A DNA stretch of 36,479 nt from Bigelowiella natans CCMP2755 (taxonomy: Eukaryota > Protista > Cercozoa): positions 1 to 36,479 of the forward strand of contig ADNK01000072.1 of the NCBI GenBank assembly GCA_000320545.1, in the 5' to 3' direction. This document shows, piece after piece, positions 3,466 to 35,833 of this stretch; the stretch's first letter is position 1, and every line of letters starts with the position of its first letter. The position numbers were made by a program, and so were the translations under genes. Below the pieces are notes generated by a model. It saw nothing but the letters and a program-made list of their open reading frames with translations, did not search any database and was not told where the DNA came from.

Positions 3466-3902
3466 GGTGTAGACCTAGATCTGATGGAAAATGGAGAAGG
3501 GGGCTGAAAGGAAAGATTCAGCGAGCCGTTACGTTCTGAGCCGTTCACTCATCGCAGTACCCCTTGCTGTCGTCATTTCGGCGAAAACAGCCAATTTTCC
3601 GTGCAAGTGCAACTCCATCCAATGCTCGAACTCGTAGGGGATTTGCTTTCTGCGACAATCTGTAGTCACACATGCTTTCGCATTATTCAGGTGCATTTAT
3701 TCACCAGAATTTGCCTGAGAGACGCTCTGGTCGTCTGGCGGATACGGTTTTGCCACGGACGGCCGTTACTGATAGAGAAACCGCTCCAGTTGGAACATAT
3801 CTCGATTACATGTACTAGATCTACGAGTAGATCTACATGTACTCATAAGCTGGCTGTTTTACTTACCCTCTACCTCAATCATCGCAGTCATCGCAAAGTA
3901 TA
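3466..3902. promoter_or_regulatory. Probable bidirectional promoter / 5' UTR region between divergent genes
   Basis: About 440 bp separate the divergent ATGs at 3465 (-) and 3903 (+). Each ATG is preceded by a pyrimidine-rich 3' splice-site-like sequence, suggesting 5' UTR introns. Inferred from gene layout only. Confidence 0.4.
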
Positions 3903-6088
3903 ATGTCTGACCTTTTCGAAGCAACAACCAAAAAGGACCTTCCTGAGCTAAAAAGTTTAATTGAGAAAAAGGCTGACGTCAATACGAAGAATGATTATGG
4001 TGGGTAGCATCTGCAGCATTACTATCATTATTTGTTTAATTCATATAAATACGGCAACACCGTATTCAAGGAATGAGACATCGGAAAGATTTCGGCAGCA
4101 GTTGTAGTTCTTGATATTGTATACATACTATCATTACTTTTGTGTCTAATATGAAATCTGTTACCACCAGGTCAAACACCGCTGGTTTTCGGTTCCAAAA
4201 AAGGGGAATTGGAGATCGTCAAGTATCTAGTAGGCATAAAGGCGAACATCGAGGCAAGGGACAATGTAGGTGGGTAGCAGCTGCAGCATTACTAGCGTTT
4301 AGGCAATAATTGCAGTATTGGGTCAATAATAGTAGTGTTGGATTAGTGTTTTAGTGGCAGTACAAGTAATAACAATAGGATTGAGTATATGGGATTGGAT
4401 ATCACCAGGTAATACGGCTTTGATGCAGAGTTCCGACAATGGCCATTTGGAGATCGTCAAGTACCTAGTGGGCATGAAGGCAAATGTCAATGCGAAAGAC
4501 AATGGAGGTGGGCAGCAGCTACAGCATTACTAGCATTTAGGCAGCAGTTGAAGTATTGGGTGAATGATAGCAGTGTTGGATTAGTTTTTTTAGTTGCAGT
4601 ACAAGTAATGGTAAGAGGATTGAGTGGGAAGAGGAGTAGAAGTTGTAGATGTATTGGTATTATGAATCCTGGTAGTAGTAGTAGTAGTAGTAGTAGTTGT
4701 TGTTGTAGTTATGGTAGTAGGATAGAGCACACATGAAGGTTAGTATGGATGGTGGTTGGGAATTATCACGGGTCATGAACGACTCGCTGAGGTTACTGAG
4801 ATATCAGGATGAGGATAGTTCTTCATATTGCATACATGCTATTCTTATTTTTGGGATTAATATGGGTTTGAATATCACTAGGTAATACGCCGTTAATTAA
4901 GAGTTCTCACTGCGGTTACTTGGATATCGCTAAGTACCTGGTTGATATGAAGGCAGACATTGAGCAAATGGACAAAGACGGTAGGTAGCAGCTGCAGCAT
5001 TACTAGCATTTAGGCAGAAGCTGTAGTGTTGGCTGAATAATAGTAGTGTTGAATTGGTTTTTTAGTAGCAGTAGAAGCAATGATAATATGATTGAGTAGT
5101 GAGTAAGAGGAGAAGCTGTAGAGGCATTGGGTTGTGAGAAGCAACACTGATATCTTGAATCATAGTACTACTACTAGTAGTAGTAGTGCTAGTAGTAGTA
5201 ATATATGTTGGTATGGATGGTGGTTGGGAATCGTCACGGATCATGAATGACTCGCTGGGGTTAATTAGATGTTAGTGAGATGATAGTTCTTGAGATGATA
5301 GCTCTTGATATTGCATACATGTTATTGTTAATTTTATTTCTAATATGGGAACGATCATCATCAGAGGCTACGGCGTTACTACATGGTTCTTTCATGAATC
5401 GCATTGAGGTTGTCAAGTACCTGGTTGATAAGAAGGCAAACATCGAGACGAAGAGCAATCGAGGTGGATGGCAGTTGTAGCATTACGAGCATTTAGGCAG
5501 CAGTCGCAGTGTTGAGTAATTGGTAGTAGTGTTGGATTAGTAAGAAATAGAGTAGAAGTAGTACTAGTAGTTCTAGTAGTAGTAGTAGTTGTAGTTGTTG
5601 TTGTTGTTGTGGTAGTAAGATAGAACACACATGAAGGTTAGTGTGGATGGCGGTTGGGAATTATCACGGGTCATGAACGACTCGCTGAGGTTACTGAGAT
5701 AGCAGGATGAGGATAGTTCTTCATATTGCATACATGCTATTCTTATTTTTGGGATTAATATGGGTTTGAATATCACCAGGTAGTACGCCGTTAATATTTG
5801 GATCACAGCAAGGGCATTTAGAGATCATCAAGTATCTAGTAGGCATAAAGGCAAACATCGAGGCAAGGGATGATGGAGGTGGGTAGCAGCTGCAGCATTA
5901 CTAGCATTTAGGCAGCAGCTGTAGTGTTAGGTGAATAATAGTAGTGTTGAATTGGTTTTTTAGTAGCAGTAGAAGCAATGATAATATGATTGAGTAGTGA
6001 GTAAGAGGAGAAGCTGTAGAGGCATTGGGTTGTGAGAAGCAACACTGATATCTTAAATCATAGTAGTAGTAGAGGTATGTAGTAGTAA

Positions 6089-6125
<37 letters not shown>

Positions 6126-7431
6126 GAGATAGAGCACACATGAAGGTTAGCATGGATGGTCGTTGGGAATTGTCGTGGTTCATGAACGACTCGCTGAGGT
6201 TGATTAGATGGTGGTTGGGAATTATCACGGATCATGAATGACTCGCTGAGGTTGATTAGAAGTTAGTGAGATGATAGTTCTTGATATTGCATATATGTTG
6301 TTGTTAATTTTGTATCTAATATGAAATCGGTTACAACCAGGATATACGCCGTTGCATGCGGCTTGTCAACCAGGGCATTTGGAGGTTGTCAAGTACCTGA
6401 TTGATAAGAAGGCAAACATCGAAGCGAGAGACCGTCAAGGTGGATACAAGCTGTAGCATTCTAGCATTTTGGCAGCAGTCGCAGTGTTGGGTGGATGGTA
6501 GTAGGGTTGAATTAGTTTTTAGTGGTAGTAAAAGGAGGAGAAGAAGTAGAGGTATGATGTTGTGAGTAGCGGCACTAGCAATACTGGTAACATGAATCGA
6601 AATAGAATTATGTAGTTGTAGTAGTAGTAATTGTAGCAGTAGTAGTAACAAATGTTGGTATGGATGGTGGTTGGGAATTATCACGGATCATGAATGACTC
6701 GCTGAGGTTAATTGTTAGTGAGATGATAGTTCTTGATATTGCATATATGTTATTGTTAATTTTGTATCTAATATGAAATCGGTTACAACCAGGATATACG
6801 CCGTTGATTTTGGGTTCTCAAGAAGGGCAATTGGAGGTTGTCAAGTACCTGATTGATAAGAAGGCAAACATCGAAGCGAGAGACCGTCAAGGTGGATACA
6901 AGCTGTAGCATTCTAGCATTTTGGCAGCAGTCGCAGTGTTGGGTGGATGGTAGTAGGGTTGAATTAGTTTTTAGTGGTAGTAAAAGGAGGAGAAGAAGTA
7001 GAGGTATGATGTTGTGAGTAGCAGCACTAGCAATACTGGTAACATGAATCGAAATAGAATTATGTAGTTGTATACATGTTATTGTTAATTTTGTATCTAA
7101 TATGAAATCGGTTACAACCAGGTGCTACGCCGTTGATTTTCAGTTCCATTCAAGGCCATTTTGATATCGTCAAACACCTTGTTGATATGGAGGCAAACAT
7201 CAACGCGCAAACGTCGAAAGGTTTTTTGTGTGTTTAAAAATTGCATTATTTATAGTAGGTTGATTTGTTGACTAGAGAATGGTGGCTGATTATGGTATTG
7301 TGCCTCGCAAACGTTGTTTAATTTTCACACCAGGCTATGACGCATTACACTACGCTCAGAAGAGGGGCCATTCAGATATCATTACTTTTCTCAAATCGAA
7401 TAAGGCCTCGGATTGCTGTGTGCTCTTGTGA
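3903..7431 (+). CDS. Ankyrin-repeat protein, 328 aa (N-cap, 8 internal repeats, C-cap), ending in CCVLL prenylation motif
   Basis: Exons 3903-3999, 4171-4269, 4409-4507, 4882-4980, 5365-5463, 5780-5878, 6341-6439, 6793-6891, 7122-7220, 7334-7431. All introns are GT-AG and phase 1; all 8 internal exons are 99 nt and translate to the ankyrin consensus (e.g. GYTPLHAACQPGHLEVVKYLIDKKANIEARDRQ). 987 nt open to TGA. The acceptor at 3887 is in frame, so an additional upstream coding exon cannot be excluded. Confidence 0.93.
4171..7220 (+). repeat. Tandem exon+intron duplication array (units about 240-560 bp)
   Basis: Introns share a 5' block (gcagctgcagcattactagcatttaggcag-like), a (TAG)n/(TTG)n tract, a ~48-nt element and a 3' block (gatagttcttgatattgcata...caccag). 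The first ~180 nt of introns 7 and 8 differ at one position. Confidence 0.92.
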
Positions 7432-7606
7432 AACGGTCATTTATACGCCTGAATAACTCTTCGGCCTACATTATTCTTCTGTGACTGCCCTCTTGTGATG
7501 TAACTTAGCTCTACTTTGTTGTTTACATTCGAATTATCGTGTTTGTTCAGTCCAAACCAAGAGCCTAAATATGCATATATTATATATTGTTAAGTCTATA
7601 TATATA

Positions 7607-7650
<44 letters not shown>

Positions 7651-8584
7651 GCGTATAGGGCTCTAGGCGTACCCATAAATTTAACACATATTATAGACAC
7701 AGTAATAGCATATATATGATCAAAGCAGCGTGTCCAGACGTGCACCACTGCTTTGTCGTGATCATGGTTTGTTCGTGTCGTCCAAGTTCGCTAGCTGGTT
7801 CGGTTCGTGTCACACGCGTAGACAGCTAGGCAGTGTGCAGAGTGCACATCGTCATGTCACGTGACACGCGTTGAGTATACACCATCCAGCCACGTGCACA
7901 AGACGCCCAGAAAGCTGCATGTGAGCGCAGAACTTGCTGGCTGGCTCTTGCATTGGTGCCATATCGATCTAGCTACACCAACACTGCGCTGCATGGGCGC
8001 CAACACTGTCCGGCCTGCGCAGCATTAACTGAATGATCTCAAGCATCAATTGCATGAAAAGCACCAACTTAGCAAGGCGTCAAGCACAGAGAGATGGATT
8101 GTGGACCCATTGTTGAGAGACAAGTGCACACCACTGCATGCGTGCGTCCGGCTGTGTCTCTGCAATCATTGTGTCAATCCATCTATAGCTAGTTAGCTAG
8201 CATTCAATAATAAGCCATGCAAACCAGTCGTTCCACGCCATGCACGTCCTCACGCGCGTGCAGTTCTGAATTACGAACACGTGATGTCATTCACTACTAG
8301 TTGATGCGCAGCATGATCAAGACAATGAACACTGCTAGCACGTGCAGAGTTCACGCATGCTAGTGCTGTGTCACAGCTGGTCATGTCACATTGGATTCCT
8401 TGTTGCTGCAAATGGTCTAACAATGACTAATGTCGATGCATATGCGAGACTCTCTAGATCTGTTTGCTAGCCAAAGGAAAATTAATCGTATTCGATTATT
8501 CGATGAACTTACAACCATGCGCACGCATCCAGTACGATACACATGTGCTGTGATGGTTCTTCAGATTCTCCTGGAATAGGAAAA

Positions 8585-11194: not shown

Positions 11195-11290
<96 letters not shown>

Positions 11291-12042
11291 TATCTCGCAA
11301 ACGAAAATGAGAGTATCTGCCCCCCACCATCTGTTTCGCCTTCCAGCAGAAGAAGAAGAGTGCGGTGGAGAGTCTCGACCGGCGCTGGGCTATTCAGACG
11401 ATGGAGGACGTCACAAGCCTAGCTGATGCTGATCCAGAAGTAAGGGAGTTTACTCGGTGGATATTGCGCCAGCAGCACGTAATCCGGCAGATGTTCGAAG
11501 CCATGCGACGCCAGACGAAGCGCGTGGCGATAAATAAACAAAAGACGATGAATGCTCTTGTGGAAAAGCTCGAGTTCCAAAACATGCGCATGTCTCTCGG
11601 CACTCGTATGGCAATTCGAATGGCCACACACGCGTTTTTGCGGACAGTGAAGCTCATTAAGCGTATCAGTAAGGATCACTACACCTTCTACGTGGAGGTA
11701 GTTGCTTGTTTAGCCGGGTTGAGAGAGAGTGGTACTCATATAATTATCTTTTGTAACCTCTTCCTCCTCCTACTCCTCCTCCTCCTCTTCCAGGAAATAT
11801 TAGAAATGCTTTCCGTTATGCTGGAGGAAGTACCTAATTTGGGACTGAAGAACTCGCCTGTTTTCAAGTGCTTCAACGGCATTTACGATTTCATCACGTC
11901 ACTCATCCTCTGCGCCAAAACAGATGCGAGAGCCAAGGTACGAAAGTTTTGTATATGGTGTATATATATATATATATATATATATTAATGTGCGCAGCAA
12001 TCGCCACAAATCTTGTACATTGAAACATATATATTTTTTGAT

Positions 12043-12077
<35 letters not shown>

Positions 12078-13291
12078 TATATATTGAAGGTAGAATGGCA
12101 TGCTACCCATGCATTTTTACGTGAGCTTTAATATGCACAAATGCACCAACCCCATGGCGACCGGTCTCCATTTTTCTATCTACATCTCGTTAGGGTCTCG
12201 AAATTTCCGCGGAACTTCGCAATCTGGCCGTGCAAGTAAGCAGAGAGGGAGTCAAGGGGAGTGATGGTTCTAGATCTATCATCATGGATGGATCGCTCGT
12301 AGTCCCTGCGTAGCTGCATTGTACAGATGTCGCAACCTGCTGCGAGTGCTCCATGTTTCCCCCCCCCCCCCTTCCCTTTCTTGTAAAGGTTCTTTTTAAG
12401 ATGGCCTTAGCGACTGGATCCGTCGGGGAGATCCTATTTCTCGTAGAAAGCTTCCTGATAAACGAGCTCGGCGGGGTTCATGAGAACTACAGGTATTCGA
12501 AAAAGAGGAGGAGTATTAGAGGAGGAGGAGTATTCAGAGACGAGAAGGCATCAGGGGCAATCCGATTCTGCATAGAAGAACCTGGATACGCATCCCCCTC
12601 ACAACAGTTGTGCTGTGCCACGCCAGCTGTCGGGTTGGGAGGGGGGGGCAGCATCGTTCCGCGAGACATCGTTCTCTATTTTTGATATGAATTCTCAAAG
12701 CCATATCGTCGATGTGTTGCTTCTAAAACCGTTCATTGAGAGATGCGTAAGAGATGTAGCATGATCCACGTATGCCTTTATGATAATAAAAATATTATTA
12801 TCATTAATAATAATAATACCGATGCCACTGTTTAAGTAGAATTCCAAAATCCAGGCGAAATTATCGATGGTTATTCGATACTCTCCCGTCATTCTTACGG
12901 CCATTCGGTCTGTTTTTGTCAAACCGCTACTACTAATTAGAATCGAGAAATCGCTGGCATATCTCGTCGACTACAAGCCTTCCGACAAAGGAAAAGCGGC
13001 GCGGATGTTCCTTGGAAAGATGGTAAGTCTACCCTTGCGATTGCGTATCCGGGTTCATCCGAGCATTCTTCTGTTGTGTGCTCACAGAGCCTGGCGTGGT
13101 TTTCTCTTCCGTTGATGTAGGTGCAAATACAAACTGAGAGCGGAAAGTACTTATGCGTCGAGCCTTCCAAGAAGATTTTGGTAGTCGTGATAGTGTGTTA
13201 CTAGTGAGAAAAGGGCCTCTGCAGCACAGCAGCAGCACAAATTACCTCAGTACCTGCCCCCCCCCTTTTTTCCCTCCTTCTTTTGTTCATA

Positions 13292-13337
<46 letters not shown>

Positions 13338-13706
13338 GACTCTGTCCAATATCCCCAGCGAGTTCACCGTTTTCGAGATTCAGAGCTCCGGTAAGACAAA
13401 ATTGTTCATGCTTGTCAATCGTTGGTAAAAAAAGGGGGGGAGGGGGGGGGGGAGATGTCGGGAGCTTTTCGAAGGCACTCTCCCGCCTTGTTTCTTGCCT
13501 TAGGCCGCATCTAAATCCATGCTTTTATCTACTGGTGCTATCACTGAATTATCCTGGTAGGCACTGTGAACTCAACAAGGACTTCCTACGACACATTCAG
13601 TATCAAAAACCCGCGCTCATCGCTGTACATCACAAACATGGTACGTGAGGGCCAACAGGGGAAAATGCAGTGTTGATATCATCCACACACACACACACAC
13701 ATACAC

Positions 13707-13748
<42 letters not shown>

Positions 13749-16700
13749 GCACAGACACCTATATGCAAATGCACATTCTCTTCTGTTGTTTGTGTTCTCC
13801 GAAGAACATGAAAGGGCAGAAAGAGATGAAGATGTCCCCGACCTGCGGTCCGCAGGAAAAGTGGAAAATCCAGCGTTCAGGAGGGGCGGGGTGAGAACTA
13901 AAAGTGCTAGCTAGAGCAGCTGGCATGCACACGACGACGATGCTGCTTATTCTCCATTGTCGCATTTGTGACTTTTTAATGTATAATCTCCGTCGTTTTA
14001 TCGCATCCGCGAGAGGCGTGAGCGAGCAGGAATCTGCCATTTCTCCCTCTCACTCCTCCCCGCCTCTTCCAATCTTAGATTCGGCTCGCGCCCCATCCCT
14101 GGCCTGACCGACGAGAACGAGGAGAAGTCCCCATTATTCACAATCGTAAACTGCTCGACTAGCGTCTCTCTCTGGGCGACTGAGGACGACATCAAAGTGA
14201 AAGGAGTGGGGTTTGGCAACGTTCAGTCCGCGCAGGACGGCGGTTTGGCATTCCGCATTGAGGTGGGCACTAGCAATGAGACTGCCACTGTTTTGCTTCT
14301 ACGATGATGCCATGTATAAAACCCTGCGTCGTTTGACAATACACCTTTGCGAGGAGAAATAATGCCGTCCTCTATCGAGCAGGGTCATCTAGTAGAGTCT
14401 TGATTTAGACAGCATATTCGTAGGAGAAAGAAATTTGTCCTCAAAGTCTTACGTGACTGTATACATACCCCCCCCCCCCCCTTCCTCCCCCTCCCCCACA
14501 ACACGCAAATCCCCATATTAAAAATCGTTAGATTAAGGAAGAGGAAGCACTGTGGGACGATGAAGAAGAAATCGATATTGGGGATAAACCGCTAACACTG
14601 GACTCCGAAGATGCGCTCGAGCGGTTCGGTGTTCCGTTGCTCAAGAAGGCCTCTGCTGTCGCGGGGGGCATATCGACGGCGTCCCGCCTCTCGATGCCCG
14701 CTGACGGCAAACTAGGCGACGAGGAGAAGGCGATTACGTCATCATCCTCCTCGCCCACCCCCCTCTCCAACATTCAGGAAGGCAGTCTCCTCGCGTCGTC
14801 GTCGTCGTCGTCGTACGAGGGTGATTCAGCCGGCGGCGGGGTTGCAGCTAAGACGGCCGCGGTTATGATTCTCGCGTCGCTAGACCGGCTCGTCGGCGCG
14901 GAGAGCATTGGCGTTGGCGAGGTGGGGGGGAGCGATTCCGGGCTGGCGACCGTCTCGAAGCCTCTTTGCATCAACGTTTCAGGCAATACGCTCAAGAGGA
15001 CGCTGAGCATAATCTCGCTGCTCTCGCCTTCGTTCTTCGCTTCGGGAGGCGTATCCGACGACGACTATGTGCCGCAGATGTACATGCTCATTGCCACGCT
15101 GCGCGTCTTGAAGGCCCACATCTACCAGCTCGTGAAGTCGAAGCTGCCGCTGAAATACTTCGAGGTCTCCCTGCTCGATGCTGCCGCTATAAAGAAGCAC
15201 ATCGTAGCGTTTATCCAGGACAAACCTAAGGCACGCACGGGGCGTCACCGCCTCTCCGCGCTCAAGATCGAGGCCATCGTGCAGGCAGAGGCCGCGCAGA
15301 TCTTCGCCGAAGGATTCGAGTTCTTCTTCCAGGCCGTCTCTGACCAGGTCACCTACCTCGCGGACCTGCTGACGAAGAGGCTCAAAACCACACAGCTATC
15401 GAAGGCCGAGCTCACCCTGCTCAAGCTGCTGCTCACCCGCTTCGCGTCGTTCTCCTCCGGCGCTCTGTTGATGGACGAGCTCGAGGGCAAAGGGCAGGTG
15501 GCGGACCACAAGAAGAGTCTCGCGGCGGTGCAAGGGACGCTCGGGCTGCTGCTTGAAGTGGCTGCTGCGGAGGCAGTGAAGGCGATTGAGGAGTTGCGAC
15601 CCGCGAAGGCGGGCAAGTCGCCCGTGATTCTGATCCTGGCCAACCTCCAGAAGCACCTCCTTTCGCGCGCAGGTCAGTGGAAGATCCTATCGGCCGAGGA
15701 GGAGCTGAAGGCGAAGAAGATGCTCAAGGCCAAGAGCAGCGCGGCAGGGAGTGACAGCTCCTGGCGCATTGCCTTCGAGACCCTCCTCGCGTACACGAAG
15801 AACCTGCTCGAATCGTCGCTCAAGGTGCTCGATAGAGCAGCCGCTCGGCTGCGCGATGTGGACGACGCGAAGCAGTTATCAGCGCTGTCCAACGCCGTCC
15901 TCCACGATTCAATGGTAGGCCAGCTTGCACGGCCAATGCTCTCCGCGGTGTCGATGTTCGTGAGCGTGAAACGGCAGTGGGTATCGGCCGCTCTGCTGCC
16001 CTTGATGGCGAAGCTGACCATGCGCTTGGATGCGATTCTGGTGCTCGCAGATCGCGTCCCTGGCTCGAAGAAGAAGGTTCCCGTCACCAAAGTGAGGACC
16101 GCGAACTCCTCCCACCCTTACGTCCCCAACAGGCGCATCGTGGACCATATATCCGTGGCGGGGGCGACGGAGATCCGCGTGGAGTTTGACGCGAGGTGCG
16201 AGACCATGAGCAACACCGACACGCTGCAGCTGTTTGCGAAGCCGGGGAAAGCGTCCCCCCTCACGCCGCCGCTGTTCGGGCCCGCTGCGAAGAAGAAGAG
16301 CGGCGGCGCCGATGCAAAGTCTCCGCGCGCGCCGCGCGACAGCAAGTCGTCTTCCGCCGCTGCTTTTACTGGCGATGCCGACGTGAAGGAGGGAAAGGAT
16401 GAAAAGGACTCGAAGCTGGGCTCCCTAGCTGCGACGACTGCGCCGAACCCTGCAGTAGCATCATCATCATCATCATCATCATCATCACGTAAACCACGTG
16501 CCACAAGGGGCGGCCCTGTGGCACCTACAGCGGCGTCTGTCCCCCCCCCCGCTGCTGCCGCTGCCCCGCGCGCGGCCGAAGTGAAGAGCCCAAAAGTCGA
16601 TGGGGCGGTGGGCGAGGGGAAGAGCGGCTACTGGCCGGCGCAAATCGATGTTTCCGGCTCGAGCTTCTACCTATCCTGGACGACCAATGGCAACGGAGGC

Positions 16701-19396
16701 TGGGGCTTCGGCCTCACCATCAAGGCGAGCGTGATGGAGATCCCGACGGCCTGGGTTCGCAAGATGGCAAAGACCGCGGCCTGGCTGACAGGAGGAATCG
16801 CAGCGACGCTCATACAGGTTGGAGACGTTGAGGCCTCCGAGACGCGCTGCAAGAGCTGGCTTCAGTCGAATCTCTTCAAGGGAGGGCTCAAGGACGGCTG
16901 CCCGCTGCTCCGCGGCATTGCTGGCCCCGAAAGCAGCTTACCCGCTCTGCACGCAGGGCTCGAGAAACTTAAAGAGCTTAAGGATGAGGCGGAGGTGAAA
17001 GAAATCGTCGCCATCGGAGCTGCAGGGACGGGCCGTCGCGAGAGCATTCCTAGTGCAGACGCAAGAGGGCTCGAAGCGTCGGCGGCGGCCTCGTCGTCCT
17101 CTCCCCATTCTTCTCTTTTCGGGAAAGGTCTAACGGGCGAGCTCTTGGGGCAAATCGCCGCAGGGGAGGGGGTGGGCGGATTACTGGTCGCAAAGCTTCG
17201 TAAAATCTGCAAGATACCGCCGGTAATGCTCGCGAGTGTGAAGCCGACAGCCGCGCGGCTGGTAAGGTCTGTATTCGCGCTTCTTCTCTACCACACCGGG
17301 ATGGGGCACACGGCCAGGAAGCTTGTAGAAGAGCAGGAGAAGAAGGAGGAGGAAGAGGGCTCTGAAGCCGACGTCCCCGAGGACATCAAAGCGGTGTTTC
17401 TGAAGGCCTCCGAGATGCAGATCGAGGCGCAGCAGATCAAGGGTCGGAAGGGAATCGAGGGGCTGGCGCAGTTTGAGAAGGAATTCATGATGAAGCTTGA
17501 CCTCGCCGCGAGCCTGAGCATGAGTACGTCGCTTTCCGAAGAGGACGAGGAGGAAAAGAACAGCAGCGAGGTCGGCGGAGGCAGTGCTGGGCCGGAGATG
17601 CCCTCCGACGTACCGCCCTTACTACTGCGCACAAGTTCGTACAACAGACAGCGACAGCTCACGACCAAGCTCAAGAGCGCCGTGCGAGCTCTCCAGCAGA
17701 TGATCTCCGCGAGGACAACCGTGGAGAAGGAGGCCGGCGACGAAAAGCTGATGAGCGAAGTCATCCGTTTCATGCGCATTCGGCCTAATCTCCTCGGGCC
17801 GCTTAAGCACGCGCTGCTATCTTCCCGCTACCGCGCAACGGCGAGGCTGTTGGCATTGAAGCACGTCGCCGAGCTTGTCCGGGAGCTACGAAGCCACTAC
17901 CTCATACCGGAGATGCTGCGCCACGTTTCCCTTTCATTCCGACTCCCGACCAACGCGTCCTCCTCGGCGAGCAAAACCAGCAAAGCGGCCGCTGGGCCCC
18001 AGGCCCCCGTCGCGCCGAGCCTAGCCAAGATCCACTTCCTGTCGCAGCTCGACGTCGCCGGGGAGAGCGTGCGCGGCGCCATCGAGGACAGCTACTTCCT
18101 CATCATCGCCGCCCTCATGACCAAGTCGAAGCTGGACGCGGCTAGCCGCATTCTTCTCTGTGAGCTCTGCAACGTGGAGTGCTCGCAGCGCGACCTCATT
18201 CGTCTCACCCAGGTGGGAATCGTGCCGCTTTTGCGCCAGGCGCTTGTAGAGGTGCTCGTAGGTCTTGCAGGCCGAAACAAGCACTGCAGGGACGTTATTT
18301 GCGCCAATGCCAACTTCGCCGAGGCGTTTGAGGCGTTCCAGGATGGTGAGGATGCAAAGGCGACAACTTCTGCTGCTGCTACCGCTACTGGTACTAGAAC
18401 CCCAACCGGTAAGATAATCCAGGGGGAAGTTGTGCGAGGGCTGGGAGACCGCACGCTGGAGCGCAGATCGTGGAATTCGCGGGCACAAACGTGGGCGCTG
18501 ACCAGGCTGCTCACGTACTTTGTTTCGCAGTATGCGGATGGCGGCAGCAGCAGCAGCAGCAGCAGCGACGAGGAGGAATCGAAGAAGACCGGAGGCATGC
18601 GAAACCTGCACGACGCGGTGATGAAGATGGTAGTCTCGCAGATCGAGGCCCTACTAGAGCTTGGACGAATCTCAACCGCGAAGAAGGGCGCGGGCAGTAG
18701 TAGGGCCCCTGATGCGAAGAAGAGCAGCCGCGGCGGCCCGAACGACGCGAAAATAAAGGCGATTTTGGACCGCTTTTGGAAGGAGGACGACGAAGGCGGA
18801 ACGCGCATTCTGCACAAGTCCCCGAGCGACGATAAGGGGATCTTTCACTTCCTCGGCACTGGACTGGGGAAGGCGGCGTTCCAAAACCCGCACGACAGCG
18901 GCAGGGTGGAGGTCACGTGCTCTGATATCGCCCGCGACGGCAACGAGAAAGCGAGCAAGGTGGTAGGTCGGGAGGCCTTCAACTACACCACCAGGCTCGC
19001 CTCGAAGCCGTTCGTCCAGGTCGATCTCAAGGCGCACAAGGTGCTCATACACGCCTTCCGGGTGAGCTTCCACAGCGCCATCGAGGACAGCAATGTCGTG
19101 ACGTGGGAACTGCAGGGCTCTGCGGACGGAAAGCACTTTGACACGATTGAGACTCACGACTCTAGTGAGCTCTTTGGAGCTTCCTCGGCCGCAGCTGCCC
19201 CTTCCTCCGGGTTCAGTTTCGGGGGCGCTCGTGCTAGGGGAGGGGCGGCACTGGCGCAGCCTTCTTCTGGGTTTCGATTTGGCAGTGGTTCTTCTTCTTC
19301 TTCTTCTTCTTCTTCGGCTTTAGCTGTATCCTCATTAAGGATTACAGCAGCAACATCAACATCATCCTCCGGCTTTAGTTTCGGGTGGCGTCGACC

Positions 19397-19435
<39 letters not shown>

Positions 19436-19950
19436 TACATATTTTAACACACACACACACACACACATTATATATACATATATACAATATCATATGGGGA
19501 GGGGTCAGAGGGGGAAGAAAAGAGAGAGAGAATGAATATCTTTCTCACAACATTTTTTACTACATGCATCGATGACGACTTTGCGTTCTTCCTCAGGGGA
19601 GCGATCATGCCGCAAGTAGCACAGCCCCTGAGGCTAACAACAGCTGCGCCCCGGAGGATCTCAGCACCCCGTAAGGCAGCAGTGAAAAATCCCGCTCCAG
19701 CCGAACTTAGCAAGCTTTATGTGCTGAAGAAGCCATCGACGATTCCTTACTCGTACCTTCGCATTCGTGCCGTGACCCTCAAAGGCACAAAGATTGAATT
19801 CGTACTCCCCCGGCTCGAGATCTTCGGTATCCTTGACCCTCAGAAGAAGGAAACGGTTGCTAAAGCCAAGGTCAGCAGCGACGAACTCCTTCCGATCTCT
19901 CTCGTTAGACAAAATGCGTTACGGAACAATATCGTAAAGTTTCTGCTGTG

Positions 19951-19982
<32 letters not shown>

Positions 19983-22900
19983 TACTATCATCATCCTAAA
20001 CAGCCACTACGATAATACCCCTCCCCCCCCTCCCCCTTTACATTTGCAGGAGAAACCGAGCGATTGGTGGCAGCTACCGGAGGCGAAGCTGCAGCCAAAG
20101 ACACAATGGAGACTAGCAAAGCCGAACTCCGAGTACCCCCTCTCTATCATCATTGGCCAGTTCTCTCGCGAGCGCAAAGGAACTGGGGGAGGGGGGGCGA
20201 GGAGCGCTGGCGGGGCCACCCTAACCTCGTCTGCAAGCATCTTTGCTACACCGCAGCCAGCGCCGCCATTATCGTTCGGAATGAGTAACGAGATAATGAA
20301 TGATCTAGACGCCGAGCTCAGCGCCTACGATGATGCTGAGTTCTCCTCGGAGGAGTCAGACTGCTTCACCGACGAAGATGACATCTTTGAACAGCAGCAG
20401 CAACTCGCAGTGATGCCGAGTGCGGCCGCCGGGGGCGGGGGTCTGTTTGGTGGCGGGGTCCAAACGGGCACGCGTACAGTCGCGTACAACAGAGGCGGTT
20501 TTGGCGTCGGCGGCAGCTTTGGCAGCGGCGGCGGATTTGGCAATCCGCGTCGTGCGGAACAACTCTCGGCCATGGCTGGTAACATCAACTACTTCGGCAT
20601 GTACGGGGTACGGGGGAGCACAGTATATCCCGAGGGGAAGCATCGCATTACGCTTCGCATCGAGATGTCCGGGGCGGGAGGGAAGAATGGCGGTGGCCGC
20701 CGCAGCCGTGGCGGCCGCCGCGCATCGCGGAACCGCGGTGCTAGCCATGGAGGCGGCCGCAGCAGCAAAGGCGCCCCCATCACCCAATTCTGCTTTGTCG
20801 GGTTGCAAGATACAAAGGTAAATGAGAACCTTCAAGCAGGGAGGGGGCCGACTGGCGGACCGATGCCTTACATGAACTATCACTCCGGCACATCGCTCTT
20901 CCAGCGCTCCTCCGGCCTCTTGGTAGCCCAGGGCAATGCGTGCTCGGGGGCTAACCCGCAGAGGAACATCGGCGTCAATATGGGCTGGTTTTGCAGCGGC
21001 GAAAAGCTCACGATCGAGTGGGATACGAGCGGCTCGGGCACGATGCGGTTTTACAAGGACGGCAAGCCAGTCGGGACACCCGTTCCCCTTTACGGGAGCA
21101 TCAAGAACGCGTACCTTGTCGTGGAATGCACGGGGAGCTTCCGCATCACGATGATGACGAGGAAAAAGGCTGAGTCCTCCGAGGACGTTGGCGGTAGCGG
21201 GGAGATATGGGCTCGGCGCTCGCGGACGGCGCACCTCTCGGATGCCTCCAACGGCTGGTACATCGACACCTTCCGTGATATTGGCTTCACCGGCGTCGCG
21301 GCTGTCCGTGATATGCTCCCAGCCAAGGGAGAGGTTGACGCGTACCTGAATCAATTCTTGTGGGTGGTGCTGCGCTGTATCAAGTCGCGGCCGGTGCAGC
21401 AATTATTGTCGCGAACAAACCATCTCCAGACCATGCTCGCTCTGACAGAGGCCTCCAGCTCTAAGGTCCAGCAGATCCTGGCCATCCGCATCGTCCGCAG
21501 CTTGCTCCCCCACAACATCGAGATGGGAGGGGGCGGCGGAAACGACCAAGCTCTGGTGCTTCTCGACTCCTACTTCGAGCGTATCGGTTTCGCAGTGCTC
21601 GGGCACAGCGGCATCCTCTCCGAGTTCGTTCACAACGAGGGCGATGATAACAAAGGTGATAAAAAGCAGCAGCAGCAAGGGGGGCAGCATGACGACATCG
21701 GCGCATCATCGAAGGCGAAGAAAGGGAGCAGCCCCGACACGGAGATAAGCGTGGCCTCCGAGCTCGGCTCGCTCATGCGCTCACTCATGCGAAAGGAGGG
21801 TTGGAGGCCCCTCGTAAACAAAGTCCTCAAGGAGTCGGGAGCAGGTTTGAAAAAGGTTCTAGCGACGCTCAAAGCGGCTGAGGAAGCCAAATCGCGCTCC
21901 GCTGCCTGCACGCAAGATTTCCGGACGACTCTCGCGAAGACCCTCGCAGCCCTCTACGTGCTCATGGGGCACTGCGAGCCGCTGAGGGAGGGCGCACGCG
22001 TGGTCGCGGAGAGCAACGGCGAGGTTGTGGCTGGGACCGTCGTGTGCATTACGAAGATGAACGAGGGCGCGGCCGCTGCGATAATGATGGAGTCGAAGGC
22101 ACAAGGAGGAGGCCAAATGGCGCCGAGCGCTCCTGGAGTCCCCTCGAGCAACGGCAAGGGCAGGACGAGCAAGAAGAAGAAGGGTGGCGTGAACGCCTAC
22201 TCAATCCACTTTGACAACGGCGACTCGGAGGTGATCGTCGACGAGACCAAGCTGGACTTCGTGGCCGATGTAGATCTAGATCGAGGGAACATCGCCGCGG
22301 AGTTCGTGGAGCTGGCGAAACCGATGGTGGCCTTCGTCGAGAAAACGGCCGAGGTAGTCCCGGTCAAGGGCTCTGACCAGCTTGCGCCAGTAACCTCGCT
22401 CCTGCTTCAGCTCCGCGCGTACACGCTGAAGGCGCTCAACTTCCTCCTCAAGGAACACGAGTTTGGGAACGTGCTGCTCGACATGAAATTCGGCACCGTC
22501 CTGAACAAGATCGCCCTCAGCCATACCGACGCCTTCAAGGACTTCGAGTTCCCGTCCCCGTACAATCTGGAGACGCTCGCTGTGCGAACCGGGTGGAAGT
22601 TTCGGGAGCTAGAGCAGAAGAGGGAGGAGGAAAAGTACCTATGGCAGTACTACGGCGGCGAGCTCCACGAGGGCGACCAGAGCGGCATCATCTACTACAT
22701 TGCAACGGACGGCTACAAAGCGCCGTGGAAAAACCCGTGCGACGGCAAGAAGATCGCGGTCACTTTCTCGTCGATGTCCCCCGACGCCGCCTCGGCCTCG
22801 GCGGTGGTTGGCCGCTCGGCAGAGCGCTGTGTGTCGCAGAACAAGCCGAAACAGTCGGTCACCGTCGACCTGCAAAGCTTCCGGGTTAAGCCCACGCACT

Positions 22901-25900
22901 ACACGCTCCGCCATTACAGCAGTGCGAACCAGGAGGCGCTCCGAAACTGGGACCTCATGGGCTCAGTCGACGGTCAGGCATGGAAGGTGCTTAAGAGTCA
23001 TCGTAACGACGCCAAGCTGAGTCAGAAGGGCCAGGCGGCCACGTGGGAGCTCCCCAAGGCCGCCAGGAAGGACTTCTACCAGCAGTTTCGCATCCAGATG
23101 ACCGGGAAGAACTCCAACAACACGTACTATCTCGCCTGCTCTGGCTTCGAGCTCTTTGGCTCCGTGATGAAGAACGACGTGCGCGTGAAACGCCCCGATC
23201 GGTCGGGCGTGGCAGTCGTAGAGGGGGGGGTGGGGGGCGAAAACGAGCGGAAGGCTGTCGCGCGTGTGATGAGCGCCAGCGCTTATCATGGGGAGAGCAT
23301 ATATTGTTGGGCGCAGTACGATGACTACGGTCTGTGTCTCACCGGGCAGAATAACGGCTTGGGCGTCCGCTCTCCGAAGCAAATCGACCAGTCGCTCTTC
23401 AACGACGAGGACATCGTCCAAATCGTCTGCCCCGGATCTCGCGCGGTGGCGCTGACCGCCTCCGGCAACGTCTACTACTGGGGCCAGCCCTTCCAGAGCG
23501 GCGGGGGCTGGGGGTTCGGCGGCTCCGGCGGCCGCATCAACCAGCCTAAGCTCGTGGAGAGCATGAGCGAGCACAAGGTCATCCAGGTGGCTGGAAACTA
23601 CCAGATCCTCCTAATGCTGACGGAGGAGGGCAAGCTCTTCTACCTGGGCTATATGCAGCGGGTCGGCGTTCCAGCGAACCCGAACCAAAGCGAGGCGCAG
23701 GATGTTCCAGGGCTAGAGGAGAAGAAGATTCGCCGCATCGCCACCTCTTCGCAGGGCCAAGCGATCGTCCTGGCGCACACCGATACCAACGAGGTGTACG
23801 TGTGGGGCAATGTTTCGCAGGCCATTTCTTGCCTCATGAGCGATCAGAACTCGAATCCGGTGCCCGGCTTCAACCAGTACAGCAACAAGCAAATCCTGAC
23901 GCCCACCCTTGTCGACGCGCTCTCCGAGCACAAGGCGGACTGGGCGCAGTTCGGCATTGGAGGGCAGACCTTCATGGCCCTCGACGTGAATGGCGACCTG
24001 TACACGACCGGGGCTATGAACCACGGCCACGGCTCCGGCACGCCGGTGAGGGAGCTCACCAAGTTGGACGACTTTGACGGCCACAAGGTGGTTTTCATCT
24101 CCGCGGCCGCTTACGTCTACTATGCTATCACTGACGAAGGACGCCTCTATGCGTGGGGCCAGAACTCCGATTATGGGTGCGGTACAGGAGGACAGGTGCG
24201 CTCGAATGTGCCCACGCCGACGCCTTGCGCGAATCTTGACGGTGAGCGCGTGGTACGGGTCTCGGGCACGGGCAGCAGCGGCCTATGTGTCACGGAAAGC
24301 GGTAATCTGTACAGGTGGGGCTACACGGATAACGCGACGTTGATGGCCCCAACGCGCTACGAGGACATTTGTTCTCTCGGCTATCAGTGGTCATGGATCA
24401 CCGTCGACCCCTCTTCCAACGGCTGCTTTCTTCTCAAGAGCAAACATGATATGCGCGTTCCAAGCAGCCCCACCCCCTTCCCCTTTACGGGGGCTCGAGG
24501 CCGTGCGAAGACGCACTTGCCGTGGTATCCGGACCTCGCCCTTCTGTGCGGCACGTTCGGTTCTTTCCTCGACTCTAAAACGCTACTCCCCAAGGACTAC
24601 GTCAACGAGATCGAAACCCTCTCTGGAGGAAGCGGGGGCGGGGCAGCGCAGCAGGAGAAGGAGAAGAAGAAGAAGAAGAAGAAGGATCAAGACCTGACCA
24701 ACAGCAGCAACTCTTACTCGCTACCTCTCGGGGAGCCTGTCTTCTCTGAGAACGAGGCGAAGTTCCTCCCCCTGGGGGACAAGGCGCAGCTTTCCGCTCG
24801 CATCCGCTTTATGGCAGGAGGTAAGGAAGCCGGTTCTTCCGATTCCCAAGATACATCTTGGTTTGAGGACGCTATCGCTGAGCAGGCAGAGGGGCAGAGC
24901 GTATTCCTCCTTCCCTTCACCATGTCCATCCGCATCAAGCCCAGGCAGCAGTCTAGCATCCCCCCCGCAGTTAAGGCGGCAAAGGGAGCCGGCAAAGAGG
25001 GCTTTAACCCGTTCGGGGGGTCGGACGCATCGACGCCAGCAGCAGATGCGAAACAGGACGTAGCAGCAGCAGCAGCAGGAGGAGGAGGAGGAGGAGGAGG
25101 AAAAGGAGCCAAACAGAGTGAAGGCCCGGGAGCAGCATCCTCGAGTCTAATCAGTAACAATGACGAGAAAATCAGTGTCGTGCTTTGTAGAATGGTGCTT
25201 CCTGTGGCGGGCGGAGAAGGAGGCGCGAACTACACCGTGGTTGAGGTTTTAGCGAACCCCTCCCTCTCGCGACTGCACCTCCGACTCATCTCGAAGAGCG
25301 GCGAGAAGCTGACGATGTTCCGTCACAAACAGACCTCTGACGCATTCGCCTCGAATAACGCTCAGGACGTGAAAGCGAAGGACATGGATATCGGCGACGG
25401 TAGCCACTCGATCACGATCGTAGGCGGGGTGAATGCAGAGGTCTCTGGTTACGTCGATGACAATCTCGTCCTACAGGTCGACACAAAGCTGCCCAGCGAG
25501 ACGCTCGATGCTGAGGAAAAGGGGCGGCTCGAAAAGGCCGTTGCGGAGACCGTCAAAACCCACAAGGAGGAGGTCTTGCTCACGTTTGCCAGCGGGTGCA
25601 ACGCGTGGGTGCGGGACGCTGGATTCTGGAAGTTCGCAGGCGATGAGGACTTCGTGAAACGCGTCGCCTCATGCGGCCTGGCATTCCTCGACAAAGATCT
25701 CACCGACGTCGAGTCTGCGCTGCAGAAGGTGCAAACGGTTGATTTCGACGCGCAAGCCGAGGCCAAGGAGCTCACAATGGGTATCATCCTCGGAGGAAAT
25801 GGCGGTTTCCTCCCCCGCGAAAACAGTACTAACAATCGGCACGACCCAAACATCAAAGAACAGGAGGGAGCTGCTGCCGGCGCTGACAAATCATCATCAG

Positions 25901-28900
25901 CAGCAGCAGCAGTAGCAGCAGCAGTGCCGATACCACATTGCTACCGCCTCCGGGAAAACTCTAACCTGATGATTCCCGTGAGTGTTGAAGCCAGCTCGAG
26001 TTGGACTGCGATCTTAGATTTCTCCGTGGAGAGTCTCCCCAAAGAGAAGGAGCCGTTGGTGCTGTTCTCCTGCAGCCCCAACGACTTCTTCGACGCTAAG
26101 GTCGACATCCCCTTCTTGCAGGTGGAGCTTCGCCACAACGGAAAGCTGCACACGAAAACCTCGACGCGGGACGCGAAGAAGGCCAGCGCCGTGCGCAAAT
26201 CGGCGAGTGTGAAACCGAAGACTTGGTATCGGCTCATCCTCACCTACGACAAAGGTGCGAACACCGGGAAACCCCACGTGTCGCTCGGCGGCGGCTTCGC
26301 CCCCGCTCTCGCAGGAAGCAGCAAGCTCACAGGAACGCTCAACGGCCGAAGCGCTCTAGTCGCGAGCATCGCCGACAAGGTTGCAGTGCCGACCTTGGAC
26401 CCCAACACTGGCCTTCCACTGCCCGCTGAGAAGAAGGGCATCAAGGTTATCACCCTCGGCAGCTCCGCGCACACAGCCGAGTACAACGTCGCCATGCTGC
26501 AGTTCTGGCCGCGGGCATTCAAGAAGGAGGAGGTTTCCGCTGTCGAGAACCCCCGCGCTCCGTTGTTGGACCCCCTCCAGACGTCGGACTACACGCGCTC
26601 GCTTCTAAAAATGGGTCACCCTGAGAGATGGTGCCTTAAGGCCATCGAGGCTTCAAAGAAGTCACGGAAGGGCGCCAGCGACTGGATAAGGCTCAATGTC
26701 GATGAGCTCAAGCGGCAGGACGAGGCCGCCGAACACCTCAAGATGTCGCAGAATCTCTCTCTCACAGGATTCCCCGTCGCGTGGTGCTCCGAGGCGCTCA
26801 GCGTCGTTGGAAACGACGAAGATGCCGCTATCGCGTGGCTGCTCTCTCACTACGACGAGCTCACTAACAAGCAGCAGCGCAAAACCGCCGAGCAGAAGCG
26901 CCAGGAGGCAGAGGAGCAGCGCCGCGCCCAGCAGATGAGGCTACGATTCACCGCCGAGAAAAAACAGTCGGGCCAGCAAACGTACCGAATCCTGAAATCC
27001 ACGCAGGAGCAGATGGACATCGAGCTGGGGACGCTGATCCAGAAGCCGAAGCCGGAGAGGGCCAAGGGCTTCGACTGCCTCGACCATGAGTCCCTCACAC
27101 GCCTTCGCTTCCAGGACCAGAAGCTGCACAAGAGCATGGCCGTGCTGTACGCGCGGCAGTGCATCCTGTCCATGCTCTCCAACTGGCCGGAGGGCGGCGC
27201 GAAGCCGCTTGATTTCGAGCACTTCGGCGGGTTTGAGTTCGTCGGGAAGTTCCTGAGACTCGTCGACTTTTCGCGCATCGACAACGGGATGGACGTCCTG
27301 CGCACGGCCGTTTCAGTGGTTCTCAGCAAAGAGAAACAGAAGGTTGAGGCCATCGTCACGGAAGGGGACTCGGAGGTGTCCATGCAGGATTTCTCGGAGA
27401 CCGCGCCGCTCTCTCTCTTCCTCGTCTCGCAGGGGCTTGGCCAGCTCATCAAGATATGCTGCGGGATGGGCGAGGACGTCGAGGATGTCACCAGTGAGGA
27501 GAAGTGCCTAGGAGCGTGGAACGCAAGCATGGTCGTTTGGATCTTCGACGTCTTCATTAAGCTTGTTCGGCCAAACAGCACGGCGGGAGAGCAAACGACG
27601 AAGCTGTCCGCGGAAGCAGCAGTCGCGCCGGCTCTTGGAAAGTACGGAAAGAAGGTGTTGCTGAAACAGGTGGTGAATCTCGTGTTTAAGTCGATCGCAG
27701 TGCTCAAGGGCCGAACCAGGCTCAGCTTCGTCCAGCTGTTAACAACGCTCATACGCCTTGGCGTCGACTACGACCGCGAATCGTGTGACGTGCTCAAGGA
27801 CCTGCTGAACCGCATTTGGCAGCAGCAGAAGCGCGACAACAAGTTTACGCAATTCTTTCAGGCCCTCCTCGAGCTGGTCATCATCCTGGATCAACAGCAG
27901 AAGGAAGAGGACTTCGCTGCAAAGGCCAGGGCGGCGGCGGAGGAGCAGAAGGCGAAGGAGCAGAAAGAAAAGGAGGGGGCGGATGCGAAGCGAGGCAGCA
28001 GCGGCGGAAGTAGCGGCGGCGGCGGCGGCAAAGAAGGAGAAATGGACGTGGCCGAGGTGGGCGGCGAGGGCGAAGAAGGGAGCAGCCTGCGTTTCACCGA
28101 ATGCAAGTTCAAGAGGAACCTCGACACCAACGGCGTCCTCTACCACATAGGCTCAAGAGGCAAGAAGGCCTACTGGGAGAACCCGGGGGAGAGCGGCGAG
28201 GTGGGCATCAGCTTCTCCTCCGTGGATGAGAAGGCGTTGGTCGATGACTTCGAGGTGTTCAATCGCGACACGTACGTCGTGGGGCTGCTCACCGACCCCA
28301 ACGACCCCCAGCCTTCGGTGACTTTCAATTTCTACGATCGTAAGATCACGCCTACGCACTACTCTTTGCGGTGCGGTGCGGACGTATCGATGGCCCCTCG
28401 CAACTGGCGGCTGGAGGCCAGCAGCGACGGGGAGTTCTGGGCGGCGCTACGAATCCATTCCAACGACAAAGGCCTCGCCCAAGCGTCCTCCACATACACC
28501 TGGCCGATCATACTCAACCCCACGCTGCGGGGCCCTTTCTCGATGTTCCGACTGGTGGGGACTGGCGGCAACGCGGGCGGCAAGGCTCAGCTTTTCGTCA
28601 GCGGTTTTGAGATATACGGCACCGTCTCCGAGCCATCGATGACGCGACTAACGTTCAACGTCTTTGACGCTAGCGAGGACCTGAAACTCGCGCAAGAGGA
28701 CCTCGGCAGCGACACGGCGTGGGTGAAATCTGTAGGCGGGGAACCAGTGAAACCCTTATCCGATAAGCTCGACAGCAACCTTTTCGAGGGGAAGAAGCAG
28801 CAAAAGACGCCGCTCGACCCGCGCCCAACGGTCGTTTGCTCCGATAAGGACGGCGTAAGAATTGTCAAGTCCGTGCAGGGCTTCACTTCCGGCCGCCATT

Positions 28901-33022: not shown

Positions 33023-33225
33023 TTACATAAGCGCTACAAGAATGGCAACTATGATGAGTGCCACCACCATCGAGAATGACTGCCAGTACAACGAGGGCTC
33101 ATCTCCTGGATAAATACGATGGAAAGATGCATGGTTGGATGAGAGATCTGGCGATGGTTTGTACATAATCCCATGAATTCGTTTGGATGGTGTATGTGAT
33201 CTTTCAATTTCATCTTTACAAAATC

Positions 33226-33260
<35 letters not shown>

Positions 33261-33618
33261 ATGCGTGAAAATATTTATATTCACCATATTAATGTTAAGT
33301 GTGACAGACCGAAATACTTCTCCCTCTCACGTTTTTCCCTTTCATTGTCGAAGAAAACTGGCGTCGTTTGGAAGCCAACCTTATCACATCCATTTTGCAT
33401 CACACGTTGCATATATGAAACAAAAAACATCGGGGAAATACGCTTTCACGAACAAAACGAAATCAAAACGAGTTGATCTGCACGCCAGACGACATCAACA
33501 ACCTCAATGTAGTGGCACACCAGCGGGAAAAATAAGAACAAGGCGAAATGCAGGGAGGCTACCGTGGCGTGCTTGATGTGCTCGTATTCTACGCGTAAAA
33601 TCGTCCACTGAAATCTAT

Positions 33619-33677
<59 letters not shown>

Positions 33678-34325
33678 TATAATCGTGAGGACGGAGACGT
33701 ATAGGGCATTACTACCATATAATTTTACCTTCGAAACAGCTCGAAAAATACGACTAGAGGCACGATGACATATTGGTATCTGCAGCGGAGGAAAGCATGT
33801 GTAAGGAAATCATAATAAATTGTGAACAACGTCATATATAGCATAGTAAAGGACAACGGCCTCCTTGCGACGTGTAAAGCCCATATCGGAAATCAGCAGC
33901 GGCGACGATTTCTTGTTTCCGCGACCAATCTCCACCCGTGTAAAATCAAAGCCTTTATTGTTCGCTTTGTATGACATCTTCCTCCTTTCTTCTTCTTCTT
34001 CTTCTTCTTCTTTCTTCTCTAACATCCAAAACTATGGCACAAGCAGGGCTGTGGTGACTACGGACAAATTCGGCTGATTGAAGATGGCAAACGGCGTGAG
34101 CGTTAAAGTCCACGAGAACCGTAGCACCAGGTTCGACACGATGGCCCAGTAGTAGAAACTTCGTTAGTCGCAGCATCACGAAGACAAGTGAAGAGTGGTC
34201 AGACAAAGTGGGGGAACATCGAGTGTCTATTGCATAAAACAAGCAAAAAATAGCGAAGCGAAGCATGGGGAGTGTTTTCATGGGGCGCGCATACGTGGGA
34301 ACACGCCACATAAACTTGCAAACAA

Positions 34326-34367
<42 letters not shown>

Positions 34368-35181: not shown

Positions 35182-35226
<45 letters not shown>

Positions 35227-35384
35227 TCAATGGCAATGGCAATGGCAATACGATTTTTCTACCGACCTTCAAAGCATTGACTAGGTACGGAAACCTAAGA
35301 TTTACATCCATATTTTAAATACAGATGCCAGCTACCTCCTGATGACTACAAGTGTGTGTAGTATAGTATATGTTCCGTTACACG

Positions 35385-35422
<38 letters not shown>

Positions 35423-35534: not shown

Positions 35535-35605
35535 CTGACGATATGGTCCCATGCACACACACACACACCCATACACACACGCGCGCGCGCGCACAGGTGG
35601 GAGAG

Positions 35606-35645
<40 letters not shown>

Positions 35646-35788
35646 AAAGAGAAGGAAGATGAAATAACGGAATAACAGTTGTTGTGTATTTGGTCACAAG
35701 CGTCCATCGTACACTATCTAATGCTATACTGTCGGTTTTTCCTCATCATCATCACTCACCCTCTTCTTCTCCTACTCGTATACACTTA

Positions 35789-35833
<45 letters not shown>

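Follow-up and report, generated by a model that had tools for sequence, protein, structure and literature searches.

Exons 7 and 8 of an ankyrin gene in Bigelowiella natans CCMP2755 lie in tandem copies of nearly identical DNA, and yet they differ at nine nucleotides, all of them residue-changing, within a patch of 24. The gene occupies positions 3904-7431 on the plus strand of contig ADNK01000072.1, and the window analysed here is that complete contig (36,479 nt, or 36.5 kb, from an assembly of 91.4 Mb in 3,736 contigs). We consider it probable, at roughly 0.6, that the exon was duplicated in tandem recently (or that its flanks were homogenised recently) and that the first helix of one copy was then remodelled in place under strong selection. 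Events of this type are known, and these exons are a clean new case in a large ankyrin family.

Clustered differences between exons 7 and 8

The gene consists of an ATG exon, eight internal exons and a terminal exon (Table 1). Each internal exon is exactly 99 nt long, is in phase 1 and encodes one ankyrin repeat (n=8). The internal exons were located by an open-frame scan for AG/99 nt/GT, and protein comparisons were run exon by exon. Tandem Repeats Finder (TRF) reported a 452-bp period across 6207-7072, with 96% matches. The alignment of unit 7 with unit 8 contained 12 substitutions at 410 ungapped sites (398 identical) and one 4-nt insertion or deletion. Nine of the 12 fall in the 24-nt patch (6355-6378 in exon 7, 6807-6830 in exon 8); the remaining three lie at 6254/6710, 6300/6752 and 6571/7023. 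Outside the patch the two exons are identical at 75 of 75 bases, and the introns that follow them show a single difference in their first 181 nt. Clustering in the patch gave a Fisher p of 3.1e-10, and none of 200,000 random placements brought nine or more of the 12 substitutions into any 24-nt window. All nine patch differences are non-synonymous: from codon 4 to codon 11, exons 7 and 8 read CAT/ATT, GCG/TTG, GCT/GGT, TGT/TCT, CAA/CAA, CCA/GAA, GGG/GGG and CAT/CAA, respectively. The first-pass annotation had described nine residue-changing substitutions in 24 nt, which were confirmed by the alignment, the clustering test and Illumina-derived contigs; its statements that the other 75 exon nucleotides are identical and that the following ~180 nt of intron differ once also proved correct.

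The locus has two copies, and a Sanger error does not explain the patch, because both patches are present exactly in Illumina contigs and the core shared by the units has about twice the single-copy depth. The exon 7 patch was found in a contig of run X2 and the exon 8 patch in contigs of runs X1 and X3, and the 309-nt core common to both units stood at ~2x single-copy depth in three DNA runs. The copies are near-identical, lie head to tail and number two by depth; no junction-spanning read was seen. An assembly or polishing artefact, in which two alleles of one exon were set in tandem or a repeat was collapsed, draws what support it has from the lack of any contig or read across the copy junction: the Illumina contigs were bubble-popped, none held both patches or crossed the junction, and Logan contigs break at the (GTA)n tract. 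We regard such an artefact as hardly credible, since two alleles would give the shared core single-copy depth, and independent Illumina data yielded each of the two patches as well as the two states of site 6571/7023.

The two patches have a common silent-site backbone. At codons 4-9, the third bases of exons 7 and 8 are equal at all six positions. For comparison we drew on a genome-wide family of ankyrin loci with one repeat per exon, whose statistics, here and below, cover 67 loci and ~130 distinct exons. Among 130 other exons of the family, none agrees with exon 8 at every one of the six third bases (the product of the frequencies is 0.0047), and the glycine codon GGG, present in exons 7 and 8, occurs otherwise in 2 of 130. 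The patches are identical at 15 of 24 bases (62.5%), as compared to the 25% expected for an unrelated block (p=1e-4). Conversion from a donor would leave silent sites unrelated to those of the recipient, whereas the silent sites found here belong to both patches. Because of the shared third-codon bases and the shared rare GGG codon, the patches are, on this sequence evidence, related in place: one descends from the other, and neither is an import.

The direction of change was read from the family and from the Pfam Ank profile (PF00023; curated cut-off 21.1 bits). Both exons score above the cut-off, exon 7 at 42.3 bits, the top of all exons in the gene, and exon 8 at 29.0, a difference of 13.3 bits; exons 2-6 score 16.6-33.3, with exon 5 (16.6) below the cut-off. 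Across the family the framework reads TPL-[I/V]-x-G-S-x-x-G-H. ILGS ranks with the commonest motifs, its codons ATT, TTG, GGT and TCT are common in the family, and exons 8 and 9 have in common a 15-nt run that extends into the patch. The exon 8 patch is therefore probably near-ancestral. HAACQPGH, on the other hand, was found in 1 of 131 sampled family exons and is unique in the assembly. We infer that exon 7 is derived, and about eight changes would be assigned to it because exon 8 is family-typical and HAAC is unique among the sampled exons and consensus-like. Exon 7 has moved toward the universal ankyrin consensus. In the numbering of designed ankyrin repeat proteins (DARPins), the changed residues are 9, 10, 11, 12, 14 and 16, which lie mostly in the helix-1 framework; four of the six are framework residues of helix 1, namely the histidines of TPLH and GH and the pair of small residues that follows TPLH.

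In the history that we favour, a 452-bp unit (the 99-nt ankyrin exon plus intron) would have been duplicated in tandem recently, or its flanks homogenised recently, and the exon copies would then have diverged in place through point substitutions, all of them within eight codons of the first (inner) helix. The exon 7 copy would have taken ~8 changes at first and second codon positions, from the family-typical I-L-G-S-Q-E to the canonical H-A-A-C-Q-P, and the exon 8 copy one, from H to Q. The driver would be selection on the protein: helix residues pack together, so that a framework switch would favour linked changes. Neither a donor cassette nor a dedicated mutator would be required.

Selection, recombination and mutation as sources of the patch

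Selection on the patch is supported by its contrast with the linked non-coding DNA. The patch carries 9 changes at 18.7 non-synonymous sites, as compared to 3 at ~311 intron sites (p=1.6e-10), a contrast that is decisive if the mutation rate is uniform. The flanks differ by 0.0078 (~0.8%). At 3.5e-10 mutations per site per generation, the rate from a 15-line mutation-accumulation experiment in B. natans (preprint 10.64898/2026.01.13.699255), this corresponds to ~1e7 generations, ample for an adaptive walk of nine steps in a large population. Because that time suffices, the contrast between patch and intron needs strong selection and no exotic mechanism, and the cluster would have been made by selection rather than by a single odd mutational event. 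The first-pass annotation had offered homogenised flanks, with selection preserving a binding patch, as one explanation. Its selection component is supported by the same contrast, and homogenisation is compatible with the data; the label of binding patch applies only in part, as four of the six changed residues belong to the framework and not to the classical variable surface. The choice between duplication and later homogenisation as the source of the young flanks is one that we can only infer.

Recombination between units is clearly at work in this gene. Units 4 and 6 form a sharp mosaic, with differences at 14 of 383 flank sites (3.7%), as compared to 35 of 83 sites (42%) in exon nucleotides 17-99 (Fisher p=6e-19). 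In this exon core, 9 of the 17 codons that encode the same residue use different codons, and the divergent block has its upstream edge at the position where the exon 7/8 patch begins. Exons 2 and 6 differ at 8 of 66 sites in their 3' two-thirds, which include a 25-nt identical run with its silent sites, and their introns are 15-18% different, which suggests exon-limited conversion.

Because recombination between units is active, two other histories stay alive. In one, the duplication is older: repeated gene conversion or unequal exchange erased the differences in the flanks, selection removed those conversions that overwrote the patch, and an old island was left between young flanks. This history shares with recent duplication the selection on the patch and the change in place, and differs only in what made the flanks young. 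The mosaic of units 4 and 6 in the same gene, with a block that starts at the exon position of the patch, speaks for it, as do exons 2 and 6, and the absence of synonymous differences in 5.3 sites would be compatible with a moderate age. We nevertheless think it unlikely, though a serious possibility. On either side of the patch, the conversion tracts would have to break off only a few bases away; if the island had the age of the core of units 4 and 6, third-position differences would be expected at about half of its codons, and none is seen; and one duplication followed by selection is simpler. In the other history, which the first-pass annotation had raised as patchwise gene conversion, a short tract of ~17-24 nt was copied into exon 7 from a paralogous ankyrin repeat, and the donor has disappeared or lies outside the assembled sequence. 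Both the gene and the family give evidence of exchange between units that is limited to the exon, the patch is bordered by the exon's two best-conserved stretches (the TPL and GH-LE codons), which would be natural tract ends, and the new residues are canonical ankyrin residues. Against this, the genome search with each 24-mer that the annotation had proposed, run on the 91-Mb draft assembly, gave no match elsewhere to either patch within 3 mismatches, and a degenerate-codon pattern search of the assembly gave none lying in an ankyrin repeat. Canonical repeats are nearly absent from the genome, with only 3 exact TPLHAAxxxGH-coding sites in 91 Mb and none of them close in DNA. A donor would also have to match the six third-codon bases by chance and carry the rare GGG (~0.005 or less). 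Conversion from a donor thus found no support, and we consider it improbable.

The patch could also have arisen in one complex mutational event, for instance through error-prone repair that left several adjacent double substitutions, or through a local mutator, with selection merely tolerating the outcome. Six of the nine changes do form three adjacent dinucleotide changes, and the spectrum is unlike that of the flanks, with 8 transversions and 1 transition in the patch as compared to 0 transversions and 3 transitions outside it (p=0.018). Localised hypermutation has, moreover, been reported in B. natans; it consists only of T/A to C/G transitions, and these occur only at TpA dinucleotides (preprint 10.64898/2026.01.13.699255). 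The patches, in contrast, contain no TpA, and 8 of their 9 changes are transversions. Nine changes in 24 nt are far denser than known multi-nucleotide events, a gain of 13 bits in ankyrin fit would not come from chance damage, and no template or hairpin was detected. We therefore give an event of this kind very little credence.

Three specific mechanisms were tried and rejected. The TpA mutator of B. natans cannot apply, because neither patch contains its target dinucleotide. Mutagenesis by a diversity-generating retroelement was rejected, as neither the window nor the genome contains the patch a second time and the changes hit all four bases (a reverse transcriptase was not searched for). A template switch or quasi-palindrome was rejected as well, since the window offered only chance-level 9-10-mers as local templates and no inverted repeats or hairpin around either patch. 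Targeted mutagenesis, another proposal of the first-pass annotation, accordingly went unsupported, given the 8:1 excess of transversions, the lack of TpA and of any A-specific pattern, and the improved ankyrin fit. At two of the three sites outside the patch, 6254/6710 and 6300/6752, unit 8 has TpA and unit 7 has TpG, a dinucleotide change of the type described for the hypermutation in B. natans, and two sites are too few to judge. Metagenome scans that used the conserved flanks returned no natural patch variants, and the 43-aa open frame that surrounds exon 7, when used in a protein word search, retrieved only distant ankyrin fragments.

Several points weigh against recent duplication followed by in-place change under selection. 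The ratio of non-synonymous to synonymous change within the patch is weak evidence, with 9 non-synonymous and 0 synonymous changes over 18.7 and 5.3 sites and a probability of ~0.10 that nine random hits would all be non-synonymous; on codon position alone, a single complex mutational event is possible. Recombination is clearly active in the gene, as units 4/6 and exons 2/6 show, and probably active across the family, so that a lost or unassembled donor is conceivable. The codon-by-codon comparison covered ~130 of at least 649 family exons. Dating and polarity rest on one assembly. The stretch is present in 14 DNA runs of 2025 from the same species, and the DNA runs probably come from lines of one strain and are hence not independent isolates. 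Expression support for the gene is thin, at 14 RNA reads and no splice joints.

The ankyrin gene, its genomic family and the rest of the contig

The positions of the exons and repeat units are collected in Table 1. The similarity of units 7 and 8 starts exactly at the second copy of the 52-nt element, and past 7072 intron 8 jumps directly to the final ~49 nt of the intron type. The introns (4000-7333) contain 10% C and 28% G on the coding strand, with a GC skew of 0.34-0.47 over 4-7 kb; they are rich in (TAG)n/(GTA)n tracts, and several hold a conserved element of ~52 nt. A search of 3700-7700 against Rfam revealed no intronic RNA family. The RNA reads were counted over 4 kb and fall mostly on the terminal exon. 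The gene ends in CCVLL (7420-7431), a putative prenylation signal of the CaaX type that carries an additional cysteine; such an end suggests a membrane-anchored ankyrin scaffold.

Table 1. Positions of exons, repeat units and patches of the ankyrin gene in the window
Feature	Position	Strand	Basis
Exon 1 (ATG, N-terminal cap-like part)	3904-3999	+	read from sequence; donor GT after 3999
Exons 2-6, one ankyrin repeat each	4171-4269, 4409-4507, 4882-4980, 5365-5463, 5780-5878	+	AG/99 nt/GT scan
Unit 4 vs unit 6, recombination mosaic	4700-5165 vs 5598-6063	+	alignment, Fisher
52-nt intronic element, two copies	6155-6260	+	TRF, period 52
Tandem unit copy 1: 3' part of intron 6, exon 7, intron 7 to (GTA)n tract	6207-6658	+	TRF, alignment
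Exon 7, ankyrin repeat GYTPLHAACQPGHLEVVKYLIDKKANIEARDRQ	6341-6439	+	open-frame scan, Pfam
Exon 7 patch HAACQPGH	6355-6378	+	unique within 3 mismatches
Tandem unit copy 2, shorter: 3' part of intron 7, exon 8, 5' part of intron 8	6659-7072	+	TRF, alignment, depth
Exon 8, ankyrin repeat GYTPLILGSQEGQLEVVKYLIDKKANIEARDRQ	6793-6891	+	open-frame scan, Pfam
Exon 8 patch ILGSQEGQ	6807-6830	+	family-typical motif and codons
Exon 9, ankyrin repeat, patch IFSSIQGH	7122-7220	+	open-frame scan, Pfam
Terminal exon: last repeat (ALHYAQKRGH), C-terminus ...CCVLL, then stop	7334-7431	+	read from sequence

The gene belongs to a family of which no published description was found in the literature searches made on it. 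When exon 7 was used as a protein query against the genome, at least 649 first-look candidates emerged, and each of the 150 scored among them was significant; a DNA search of the genome likewise found many such ankyrin arrays. Among adjacent unit pairs (n=108), the patch had a median divergence of 0.29, as compared to 0.125-0.20 for splice-anchored intron windows and 0.12 for the remainder of the exon. Where pairs were less diverged, the proportion of non-synonymous differences in the patch (pN) exceeded that of synonymous differences (pS), and the two were equal at an intron divergence of 0.15 or more. The most variable family codons are 0, 5, 8, 9, 30 and 31, and among them are five of the six positions that the DARPin design randomises. 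When exon pairs with no more than 3 differences outside the patch were compared, the patch distances were bimodal, with 11 pairs at 0-2 differences and 13 at 9-11; with up to 4 outside differences, the patch differences were spread evenly across codon positions. Patch exchange, or old patches, are thus probably also present in the family. Exons 7 and 8 are unlike such pairs in that their silent-site backbone is shared. Family-wide homogenisation of introns was considered and rejected: gapped alignments had made introns look more alike than synonymous sites, and ungapped splice-anchored windows disagreed.

Two observations on single arrays may be added. At one locus (L014; G000:C891:13137-16391, minus strand), the introns of adjacent units are 2-7% different by a gapped estimate, which understates divergence, while differences are found at 9-11 of the 24 patch sites and at 4-8 of the other 75 exon sites; the array alternates between two types of patch, forming a two-unit higher-order repeat. 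At two others (L026 on G000:C869 and L030 on G000:C864), the 24-nt patch IAGSKSGH is identical and the rest of the exon differs once, which would reflect either a segmental duplicate or haplotig, or the sharing of a patch between arrays.

It may be, although we regard the idea as doubtful, that exons 7 and 8 represent the first step of a germline diversification, in which hundreds of one-repeat ankyrin exons of this alga, each 99 nt long and in phase 1, are multiplied and reshuffled by recombination in their intron repeats ((TAG)n, the conserved 52-nt element) and then come under diversifying selection at helix 1 and the hairpin. The outcome would be a DARPin-like library of binders, perhaps directed against the giant viruses and virophages that infect chlorarachniophytes and integrate into them.

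Elsewhere on the contig, two huge open frames of 1,588 and 3,976 aa lie on the plus strand at 14637-31878, with an AT-richer gap of ~540 nt between them. Their domains are RCC1-like, F5/8 type C (below the Pfam cut-off), UBA-like, SPRY and a C-terminal HECT, and because of this domain set the block is, as judged from sequence, a HERC-like giant ubiquitin ligase. Its G+C content is ~60%, as compared to 40-45% around it. Very many long perfect dinucleotide microsatellites, of the (TA), (AC), (AG), (TC) and (TG) types, occupy the intergenic stretches 1-1400, 11197-13750 and 33200-36100.

Comparison with known systems and meaning

Young duplicates in which coding sites evolve faster than introns include the snake-venom phospholipases A2, the conotoxins and the primate ECP/EDN genes. 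Exons 7 and 8 resemble them in having near-identical non-coding flanks, an excess of residue-changing differences in a short functional segment, and asymmetry between the copies. In those systems, however, whole genes are involved, whereas here a single internal repeat exon has changed, with framework residues converging on the ankyrin consensus. The tandem red and green opsin genes of primates, in which gene conversion homogenises the introns and selected exon sites stay different, offer a second parallel: there, too, the copies are in tandem, the flanks are more alike than the selected coding sites, and recombination occurs in the array (here, in units 4/6). The exon 7/8 patch differs in that it has no synonymous differences, so that an old island is not required, and in that the copies are exons of one transcript.

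The family as a whole resembles the DARPin design, since its variable codons 0, 8, 9, 30 and 31 correspond to DARPin positions 5, 13, 14, 2 and 3 on a fixed framework; exons 7 and 8, in contrast, show a switch of the framework itself and not a swap of randomised surface positions. Diversification by gene conversion from cassettes is known from the variable lymphocyte receptors of lampreys, the mosaics of variant surface glycoproteins in trypanosomes and the pseudogene donors of chicken immunoglobulins. With these systems the exons have in common a short divergent patch within conserved flanks of a repeat protein and a large related family in the genome; they differ from them in that no donor was found for either patch and the silent-site backbone of the recipient was kept. 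Finally, tandem duplication of exons with mutually exclusive or optional use is known from Dscam and from ion-channel genes. Like those exons, exons 7 and 8 are adjacent, equal in length and phase and different only in a functional segment, and skipping either would keep the frame. Unlike in those genes, all internal exons of this ankyrin gene are such units. Exon skipping in B. natans has been reported but is disputed (PMC6142364).

With a neutral background that is nearly blank, each step of helix remodelling in a repeat protein can be read. The case of exon 7 includes a switch from the lineage-specific I-x-G-S framework back to the universal H-x-A-A/C consensus, and the two exons form a natural pair in which protein engineers could study the effect of a framework switch on stability and binding. 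They also provide a case of selection following the duplication of an exon that can be dated, at ~1e7 generations by the measured mutation rate. Along with the mosaic of units 4 and 6, they show that recombination of units and fast change in place both shape a very large ankyrin family, of at least 649 candidate exons.

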